Position numbers and translations under genes: made by a program. Shown one piece after another: positions 6,496-7,614 of a stretch of 54,129 nt of DNA (positions are counted from its first letter, which is position 1; each line of letters opens with the position of its first letter). This stretch comes from Octopus bimaculoides. Taxonomy: Eukaryota. The notes beneath the pieces are model-generated. The model made no database searches. It saw nothing but the letters and a program-made list of their open reading frames with translations, and was not told the DNA's origin. The DNA is taken from the NCBI RefSeq assembly GCF_001194135.2, contig NC_069002.1:18693133-18747261 (forward strand), in the 5' to 3' direction.

Positions 6496-7614
6496 TCACT
6501 TCGTCTGTTCCGTGTACTGTTTATAAAGTTCGCTATTTCTTTTCATGATATCCAAACACGACCCTAACAACCGTTCAAAAGAGTCTCTTTGTAAAAATGC
6601 CACCTGTATGTCACCCACTGCGTATACGTTGGCTGACCGTGGTTTATTTTCTATAAGAGCCAGTTCTCCGAAATACGATCCTTTGCACAATCGACCCACC
6701 TCCTCTACTTCTCCTTCTGGGTCGTCTGGTTTATGGCAAATGGTGACCCTTATCTCACCCCTTTCCACAAAATACATACCGTCAGCTCCGTCACCCTGCT
6801 TGATGATCTGGGTTTGGTCCGAGTAGTTTTGCGAGACCAGTGCATCGGCCAAACTCATTCTTTCGTACTGGTCGAGCGATTTCAAAATGGGTACATTTTC
6901 CAGGAAATCCTCGTACATTTTGCGTTTATTGCAAGCTCTTTTCAGAACGATTCGCCGAAATGAATTTCGGTCCATCGCCCATAACATGCCCCCTTCCGAC
7001 ACAACAGTAACGGTCGCCGATCGCGGCTTGTTATACAAAAGTGCTAACTCACCGAAACTGCCCGTATCTACGAACTGGTGGACTTTCCTGGTAGTTCCGT
7101 TAGTTTCCACAAATACATCGTAAATTCCGCTGTCTATCACATAAAAATTATCTCCATCATCTCCTTGGGAGATCACTTCTTCCCCAGCACTCACCTTTTT
7201 CCCGAACATTGCATCAAGAACTTCCTGCATTTGGTCGGAATCTAAAGATCGGAATATTAAAATGCCGCTAACAGCTTCTGTCAGACGTCGACGTTGTTCG
7301 TCCGTTTTCGGGTGGACGACTTTCTCATCATCGTCATCAGCTTCGGGGTCATACTTTTCGGCTGAAACAGAATGTCGACGTGCAGCTCGATTCGAGAAAT
7401 TGGTTTTAGGTTTCATCGATGATGGTTCTGGTTCTCCAGCTTCGCCCTCATCCACCATGATGTACATGGGGACCGTCTTAGGCTTCCGATTTTCTCGCAC
7501 CCTCGTGAAATAGTCTATTGCGAAGTCGTAGATGTCAGCCGGCCTCTCTCGTAGAACTGCTACAGTGAAATCTCTCAGCATATCACCAAGACCCTCCGGG
7601 ATTTCAAAGCTCAT
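6496..7614 (-). CDS. PRKAR2: cAMP-dependent protein kinase type II regulatory subunit, single-exon ORF, 372 aa
   Basis: RII-type D/D domain (FEIPEGLGDMLRDFTVAVLRERPADIYDFAIDYF), inhibitor site RRHSV with P-site Ser (RII hallmark), two CNB domains with PBCs FGELALLYNKPRSAT and FGELALIENKPRSAN, ATG at 7612-7614 in aaagtcATGA context, TGA at 6496-6498, no frameshift or intron. Confidence 0.97.
   Translation of the reverse strand: MSFEIPEGLGDMLRDFTVAVLRERPADIYDFAIDYFTRVRENRKPKTVPMYIMVDEGEAGEPEPSSMKPKTNFSNRAARRHSVSAEKYDPEADDDDEKVVHPKTDEQRRRLTEAVSGILIFRSLDSDQMQEVLDAMFGKKVSAGEEVISQGDDGDNFYVIDSGIYDVFVETNGTTRKVHQFVDTGSFGELALLYNKPRSATVTVVSEGGMLWAMDRNSFRRIVLKRACNKRKMYEDFLENVPILKSLDQYERMSLADALVSQNYSDQTQIIKQGDGADGMYFVERGEIRVTICHKPDDPEGEVEEVGRLCKGSYFGELALIENKPRSANVYAVGDIQVAFLQRDSFERLLGSCLDIMKRNSELYKQYTEQTK

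Follow-up and report, generated by a model that had tools for sequence, protein, structure and literature searches.

An ancient intronless lineage of type II PKA regulatory subunits with hydroxyl residues in both phosphate-binding cassettes, in Octopus bimaculoides and other molluscs, annelids and a nemertean

The way in which PKA (the kinase dependent on cAMP) and PKG (its cGMP-dependent counterpart) tell the two nucleotides apart is a textbook case of second-messenger fidelity, and the Ala/Thr switch directly after the Arg of the phosphate-binding cassette (PBC) is its best-known determinant. Here we describe a gene for a type II PKA regulatory subunit (RII) in which this Ala is replaced by Ser in both cassettes. 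It occupies positions 6496..7614 of the minus strand in a 54,129-nucleotide stretch of the Octopus bimaculoides genome (contig NC_069002.1, positions 18,693,133 to 18,747,261; hereafter, the window), and all its features given below lie on the same strand. The gene belongs to an old paralog lineage, distinct from canonical RII, and we hold its paralog status, retrogene origin, maintenance by selection and remodeled ligand pockets, taken jointly, with high confidence.

The open reading frame translates without interruption into 372 codons plus a stop, and constitutes a complete, single-exon coding sequence. Pfam identifies in the product one RIIa docking/dimerization domain (PF02197, E = 6e-10; aa 8-43, 7486..7593) and two cNMP_binding stretches (PF00027). 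The closest solved structures by sequence are those of RII-beta and RII-alpha (E ~1e-108 to 1e-105), and the best fold matches of an AlphaFold2 model (mean pLDDT 83) are RII and RI structures (2qvs_B, 3tnp_B, 1cx4). The inhibitor/autophosphorylation site R79-R80-H81-S82-V83 (7366..7380) has the phosphorylatable RRxS form of type II subunits, not the RRxA/G pseudosubstrate of type I; R79, R80 and S82 are invariant in all 195 sequences of our RII alignment, which comprises 79 members of the hydroxyl-type clade described here and 116 canonical RII. Given these domains, structural relatives, fold matches and inhibitor site, the product is a type II PKA regulatory subunit, as an earlier note on this DNA had proposed from the sequence alone; the GenBank annotation is 'RII-like'. 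The two cyclic nucleotide-binding (CNB) domains were delimited using Pfam, the solved relatives and the AlphaFold2 model, CNB-A to approximately aa 104-232 (6919..7305) and CNB-B to approximately aa 233-356 (6547..6918). The phosphate-binding residues E189/R198 of PBC-A and E317/R326 of PBC-B are likewise invariant in the alignment. Because these Glu and Arg residues and the inhibitor site are intact, the paralog is predicted to act as a cyclic-nucleotide-released inhibitor of the PKA catalytic subunit (PKA-C), with release upon cAMP binding as expected of an RII.

Both cassettes depart from the family pattern at the same position. PBC-A, GELALLYNKPRSATV, covers aa 188-201 (7012..7053; GELALLYNKPRSAT) and contains Ser199 (codon TCG, 7018-7020) next to the invariant Arg198. 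PBC-B, GELALIENKPRSANV, covers aa 316-329 (6628..6669; GELALIENKPRSAN) and contains Ser327 (codon TCA, 6634-6636) next to the invariant Arg326. Translation confirms both serines where the earlier note had placed them. The Ala of the PRAA type that follows the cassette Arg is typical of the RII family without formally defining it, and is found at both aligned positions in RII-beta and RII-alpha; here it is replaced in both cassettes. At site A (aa 199), clade members carry Ser (77 of 79), Thr (1) or Ala (1), compared with Ala in 115 of the 116 canonical RII and Ser in one, that of Gigantopelta. At site B (aa 327), the clade has Ser in 59 members and Thr in 20, and no member has Ala, compared with Ala in every canonical RII (116/116). 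The swap of Ala for a hydroxyl residue in both cassettes, as originally proposed, is therefore real, and with near-fixed hydroxyls in 79 clade members against Ala in 116 canonical RII the pattern goes beyond chance. The background facts given in the note also agree with PDB sequences, which have RTAT (CNB-A) and RTAN (CNB-B) in PKG I, RSAN in CNB-B of PKG II, and RSAW in bacterial CRP.

The serines are not peculiar to this octopus gene: its orthologs in molluscs, annelids and a nemertean share them. Of the 120 proteins closest to it in a public collection, hydroxyl residues occupy the cassettes of 81, and 39 are of the Ala-Ala type. The hydroxyl type occurs in cephalopods, chitons, bivalves, gastropods, annelids (Owenia, Dimorphilus, Paralvinella, Capitella and Helobdella) and the nemertean Lineus, and coexists with the Ala-Ala type within single species, for example in Mytilus, Mercenaria, Liolophura and Owenia. 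With a canonical chiton RII as query, a search retrieved the canonical RII of Octopus sinensis and O. bimaculoides (PRAATV, PRAATA), the latter (XP_014786590) being 51% identical to the paralog. The note had named Ser as the ordinary state of mollusc RII as a finding that would refute its reading, and this applies by half: Ser is indeed ordinary in all orthologs of this gene, but the separate canonical RII, which those species (O. bimaculoides among them) also carry, keeps Ala. The search with chiton RII also retrieved the Aplysia 'PKA type II regulatory subunit' (P0328), cloned for plasticity studies, which is canonical Ala-Ala.

In neighbor-joining trees, built without an RI outgroup, the hydroxyl group is separated from all canonical RII, from cnidarian to vertebrate, with bootstrap support of 99/100, 100/100 and 200/200. 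As RII from cnidarians, deuterostomes and arthropods carries Ala throughout, Ala is ancestral, and on this sequence evidence we place both Ala-to-hydroxyl changes in the paralog stem, before the mollusc/annelid/nemertean split. The clade stands beside arthropod RII in 152 of 200 bootstraps and with canonical lophotrochozoan RII in none (0/200), a grouping that may be due to long-branch attraction. A representative search of the whole library, clustered at 50% identity so that the clade collapsed, showed a repeated occurrence of hydroxyl residues in the cassettes of varied R-like proteins. Ser or Thr follows the cassette Arg at both sites in the rotifer Adineta (P0375/P0214) and the nematomorph Gordionus (P0254), and at site A only in the trematode Calicophoron (P0179) and the bug Cimex (P0186); as these proteins fall outside the clade in the trees, the hydroxyl change has recurred in protostomes. 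A literature search for this paralog in molluscs, annelids and nemerteans, including a survey of PKA-subunit evolution (PMC12083921), found no description, and a second, intronless RII lineage with hydroxyl cassettes thus appears undescribed so far.

Several variants were observed within the clade. Gastropods have additional hydroxyl-type copies (P0034, P0054, P0056, P0058, P0063, P0067; P0080, P0081, P0085), with two in Haliotis, two in Patella, and a longer form in Aplysia and Elysia with cassettes PRSA and PRTA. In a leech-like sub-lineage (P0073 of Helobdella; P0176/P0373/P0374; P0159), the PBC-A Ser has reverted to Ala, with the PBC-B Thr kept. At aa 196 (7027-7029), two residues before the PBC-A Arg, O. 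bimaculoides has Lys (NKPRS), as opposed to Met (NMPRS) in Argonauta and in 73 of the 79 clade members.

The gene structures of the two paralogs are sharply different. The paralog coding sequence is contiguous in the genomic DNA of O. bimaculoides, Argonauta hians, Crassostrea (two assemblies), Liolophura, Lineus and Owenia, that is, in six species of three phyla. The structure of the canonical gene was taken from Liolophura, Owenia and Mercenaria in place of octopus; this gene spans 60.5 kb, 70 kb and 122 kb, respectively, and has at least 11 coding exons (tblastn, Liolophura and Owenia) with similar boundaries in chiton and annelid. The paralog and the canonical gene map to different chromosomes in Liolophura (CM072727.1 vs CM072726.1), Owenia (contig 10 vs contig 5) and O. 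bimaculoides (the 37.7-Mb record CM046622.1 of assembly GCA_001194135.2, which holds the window, vs a 127-Mb record). The absence of all canonical introns at once points to retroposition, and the most likely origin of the paralog is an RII mRNA that was retroposed prior to the divergence of molluscs, annelids and nemerteans; the copy has persisted beside the canonical multi-exon gene ever since. After the stop codon in the window, no poly(A) remnant was found, only (CA)n and (TA)n microsatellites; missing poly(A) and target-site duplications are uninformative because their erasure is expected at such an age. The earlier note had overlooked this intronless, retrogene-like structure, as well as the change of Gly to His, Tyr or Phe on strand beta5 of CNB-A described below.

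The paralog is under strong purifying selection. Between the O. bimaculoides gene and its Argonauta ortholog, dN is 0.034 and dS is saturated, so that the dN/dS of ~0.01 is an apparent value. The mollusc, annelid and nemertean lineages have been apart since the early Palaeozoic, for some half a billion years. In six species, Ser is encoded by TCG, TCA, TCC or TCT, with all four third bases in use, and each such TCN codon is a single step away from both Ala (GCN) and Thr (ACN). Site B nevertheless alternates between Ser and Thr and is never Ala, so the conserved property is the hydroxyl group. Taken together, these observations support the view that the hydroxyl changes are held by selection as an ancient clade-wide trait. 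The earlier suggestion of selection stands to the extent that both changes are maintained across three phyla, with synonymous turnover of the TCN codons and no Ala at site B; the changes are not a recent event in the octopus gene.

The remodeling of the pockets extends beyond the two serines. When alignment columns were ranked by their power to separate the clade from canonical RII, the top columns in the folded domains were 327, 181, 179, 199 and 322, along with 343, 345, 354, 167 and 14. Column 179, on beta5 of CNB-A, is His in 61, Tyr in 9 and Phe in 6 of the 79 clade members, and Gly in 115 of 116 canonical RII; two residues further, column 181 is Phe in 77/79 and Tyr in 116/116, respectively; and column 322, in PBC-B, is Glu in 66/79 and Thr in 116/116. 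His179 (CAC, 7078..7080) lies 10 residues ahead of the PBC-A Glu and is equivalent to PKG I-beta Cys173 in CNB-A and Arg297 in CNB-B, and to Thr192 of human RI-alpha. This beta5 position, 'site 3', docks the guanine ring in PKG (PMC3080414), and the T192R substitution together with A212T makes RI-alpha responsive to cGMP (PMC4565163). With the change at aa 179, CNB-A of the paralog thus differs at each of the two positions known to read the base. The adjacent pair reads Val178-His179 here, Val-Gly in canonical RII and Leu-Cys in CNB-A of PKG I; CNB-B of PKG I has Leu-Arg on beta5.

The beta5 and PBC-A residues go together. Among all two-domain sequences in hand, 146 combine Ala with Gly and 95 combine Ser with His, Tyr or Phe; in the clade members with PBC-A back to Ala (Helobdella, P0176 and relatives, and P0159), the beta5 His has become Leu or Thr. 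The pairing has exceptions: a rotifer protein and one canonical RII combine Ser with Gly, and the protein of the insect Chrysoperla combines Ala with His. In CNB-B, the beta5 residue of clade members is Gly, Ala, Ser or Val. The O. bimaculoides protein has Gly307 (6694..6696), as in the 'VGRL' of RI-alpha; it is located 10 residues before the PBC Glu and, by this fixed spacing, aligns with PKG I-beta Arg297, which agrees with the assignment made in the note. In Helobdella, CNB-B at first sight unites the beta5 Arg of PKG with its PBC Thr, but this reading was rejected: the loop carries a one-residue insertion, and the residue in question is the usual Arg conserved at E-9.

These features suggest how the paralog may work. 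[quoted passage not shown] The Ser/Thr hydroxyl would form hydrogen bonds with the 2-amino group of syn-cGMP and with an equatorial phosphate oxygen, as in PKG, so that affinity for cGMP would be raised and that for cAMP not penalized. The resulting holoenzyme would still be activated by cAMP but would discriminate against cGMP more weakly than canonical PKA-II. As the beta5 Arg of PKG is missing from CNB-B, the expected result is a dual sensor and not selectivity for cGMP.

The precedents for this proposal come from PKG and from engineered RI-alpha. In PKG I-beta, the Thr that follows the cassette Arg makes bonds to the 2-amino group of syn-cGMP as well as to the equatorial oxygen of the phosphate; replacement of Thr193 of PKG I with Ala or Val increases the Ka for cGMP 27-29-fold, and replacement with Ser only 4-fold; and PKG CNB-A, which has Thr, binds cAMP and cGMP almost equally, with a ~2-fold preference for cGMP (PMC3080414). 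In CNB-B of RI-alpha, single PKG-type substitutions abolish selectivity for cAMP and a double substitution reverses it (PMC3765617), and RI-alpha mutated in both domains yields a cGMP-selective holoenzyme (PMC4565163). By analogy with these systems, relaxed cAMP/cGMP selectivity of the paralog in vitro would have about an even chance. A class of spiralian PKA-II holoenzymes built on this retrogene R subunit and physiologically activated by cGMP as well as cAMP is a considerably more tentative proposal and is unlikely.

Several points weigh against a dual sensor. CRP also has Ser after the PBC Arg (RSAW) and is cAMP-specific, so the hydroxyl alone does not dictate selectivity. The CNB-B beta5 Arg of PKG I is absent, being Gly307 here, and the position is not consistently changed in the clade. 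The sporadic hydroxyls in RII-like proteins of rotifer, trematode, nematomorph and bug, and the beta5 His in some Ala-type RII, such as that of Chrysoperla, indicate that the site is somewhat tolerant. The mussel type II PKA holoenzyme is reportedly ~100-fold more sensitive to cAMP than to cGMP, a figure that might apply to either paralog; the mussel literature recognizes only Rmyt1 and Rmyt2, and Rmyt2 was defined by partial peptides. Finally, the engineered precedents are RI-alpha and not RII. The effect on selectivity could be modest.

One alternative to the dual sensor is that the hydroxyls and the beta5 residues tune the affinity or kinetics of cAMP binding and not the choice of base, with Ser mainly adding a hydrogen bond to the cyclic phosphate; the product would be a PKA-II with another cAMP threshold or off-rate, for a particular tissue or compartment. 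In the structures of PKG I-beta CNB-A, Thr193 OG1 contacts the phosphate oxygen at 2.7-2.9 A whether cGMP or cAMP is bound (PMC3080414, Table 2), which fits this explanation, as does the use of Ser by the cAMP sensor CRP; furthermore, the clade's own linker motif, changes on the dimerization/docking (D/D) surface and diverged C-terminal tail suggest sub-functionalization in docking or allostery as much as in ligand choice. However, the same hydroxyl is the main contact of the guanine 2-amino group (PMC3080414), the Ala-to-Thr change in RI-alpha abolishes selectivity for cAMP (PMC3765617, PMC4565163), and the accompanying change at the beta5 base-docking position points to recognition of the base and not the phosphate. 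We regard tuning of the cAMP response as possible but somewhat improbable. That the changes are instead near-neutral accidents of history, fixed in the paralog stem and kept by epistasis with no functional meaning, might be suggested by the recurrence of Ser/Thr at this site in unrelated RII-like proteins, where it is evidently tolerated, and by the Ser in PBC-A of the canonical RII of Gigantopelta. With Ala a single mutational step from every TCN and ACN codon and yet seen in 0/79 clade members at site B and 1/79 at site A, and with free synonymous turnover and an S/T interchange that preserves only the hydroxyl, this explanation is very improbable.

At the other extreme, the paralog could be a truly cGMP-selective R subunit that makes PKA-C cGMP-dependent, or could bind another ligand (cIMP, a pyrimidine cNMP or a nucleoside). 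The PKG hydroxyl is present in both pockets, PBC-B has the R-S/T-A-N of CNB-B in PKG I and PKG II, and CNB-A gains a hydrogen-bonding or aromatic beta5 residue, all of which would suit selectivity for cGMP; but the beta5 Arg required in CNB-B of PKG I and in engineered RI-alpha is absent, and PKG CNB-A, where Thr stands alone, has only a 2-fold preference for cGMP (PMC3080414). A full switch to cGMP without the CNB-B beta5 Arg is unlikely. For a nucleoside ligand of the trypanosome type (PMC10959531), the invariance of the phosphate-binding Glu and Arg is a further difficulty. To this set of possibilities we assign a slim chance, the smallest of those considered here.

The paralog shares with canonical RII (PRKAR2A, PRKAR2B, invertebrate RII and XP_014786590) the domain order, the C-helix Tyr, here Tyr364 (6523..6525), equivalent to RII-beta Tyr397, and the Glu and Arg that are invariant in the cassettes, with ~50-57% identity. 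Canonical RII differs in having Ala in the cassettes, Gly and Tyr on CNB-A beta5, Thr in PBC-B, and at least 11 exons, and it lacks the linker motif, Gly10/Arg14 and short diverged C-terminal tail of the paralog. PKG I and PKG II resemble the paralog in the hydroxyl directly after the PBC Arg, and the RSAN of PBC-B is that of PKG II CNB-B and is close to the RTAN of PKG I. They differ, however, in having Arg297 at CNB-B beta5 where the paralog has Gly, Leu-Cys in CNB-A where it has Val-His, and a fused kinase domain and leucine zipper, and their overall similarity to the paralog is far below that of RII; the paralog reading frame ends after CNB-B, and Pfam finds no kinase domain in it. Bacterial CRP/CAP has the same Ser after the PBC Arg (ERSAW) but is a cAMP-specific transcription factor that contains just one CNB domain; its example shows that Ser by itself is not enough for cGMP binding. 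In engineered RI-alpha, a hydroxyl residue likewise takes the place of Ala at these two PBC positions, and CNB-A beta5 is also altered (T192R), but the background is RI instead of RII, the residues are Thr instead of Ser and, at beta5, Arg instead of His, Tyr or Phe, and CNB-B of the paralog keeps Gly. The RI-alpha Ala-to-Thr mutants, with or without the beta5 Arg, are reportedly due to Shabb (1990/1991) and to Lorenz and Herberg. As a retrogene, the paralog is comparable to PRKACG, a primate intronless retrogene of the PKA catalytic subunit with an intact reading frame (PMC12083921), which differs in being primate-specific and catalytic, whereas the paralog is regulatory, present in at least three phyla and under strong purifying selection.

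The clade is also distinctive outside the ligand pockets. Between the D/D domain and the inhibitor site, aa 46-75 (KTVPMYIMVDEGEAGEPEPSSMKPK; 7390..7479) have the linker consensus KxVPMYxIVDxDExAGEP...FKPK and are predicted to be disordered (pLDDT <50). Of the 79 clade members, 78 have Tyr51 and all 79 have Val54, these columns are absent or mostly gapped in the 116 canonical RII, and columns 48-73 are among the most clade-divergent in the ranking; this segment may serve in docking or regulation. The first helix of the D/D domain (7573-7587) carries two clade-specific replacements, Thr10 by Gly and Gln14 by Arg. Positions 10 and 14 are on the AKAP-helix-binding face of mammalian RII-alpha, and the paralog may therefore use different anchoring partners. 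Past Tyr364, the tail of clade members (aa 365-372; 6496-6522) is shortened and diverged, and the canonical ...YEEQLVxxF ending is gone.

No tRNA or Rfam matches and no other intact genes were found in the 54-kb window. Fragmentary reverse-transcriptase reading frames at 29514-29924 (+), 31488-31892 (+), 46053-46631 (-) and 47481-48385 (+) match Pfam RVT_1, one of them above the gathering score, and are decayed remnants of non-LTR retrotransposons. The window also contains 12 runs of N (10-947 bases), including 840-1197, 6176-6240, 22355-22693, 25339-26018 and 49725-50671, which have (TA)n, (CA)n and (TATG)n-like microsatellites on their flanks and are assembly gaps in simple repeats; one of these runs lies 256 bases downstream of the stop codon of the paralog. 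A Logan contig (L002) that is 99.5% colinear with the genome over 1634 bp was rejected as evidence of expression because RNA and DNA are not distinguishable as its source.

The clade described here is a natural PKA R subunit with the PKG-type hydroxyl in both pockets and a remodeled CNB-A beta5 site, found beside an unmodified canonical copy in the same genomes. With it, the family of PKA subunits gains an ancient, functional retrogene, and the paired paralogs provide a ready natural comparison for the selectivity residues in an RII background. In these animals, reagents, peptides and knock-downs directed at 'RII' may strike either of two proteins. If cGMP as well as cAMP activates this holoenzyme physiologically, the paralog would be a natural analogue of the laboratory conversion of PKA towards PKG, with Ser and beta5 His/Tyr/Phe instead of Thr and Arg. 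It would then offer a second route, besides PKG, from nitric oxide (NO) and guanylyl cyclase to protein phosphorylation, and would change the reading of the NO/cGMP and cAMP pathways in the neurobiology of molluscs and annelids such as Aplysia, Lymnaea, Octopus and Platynereis.

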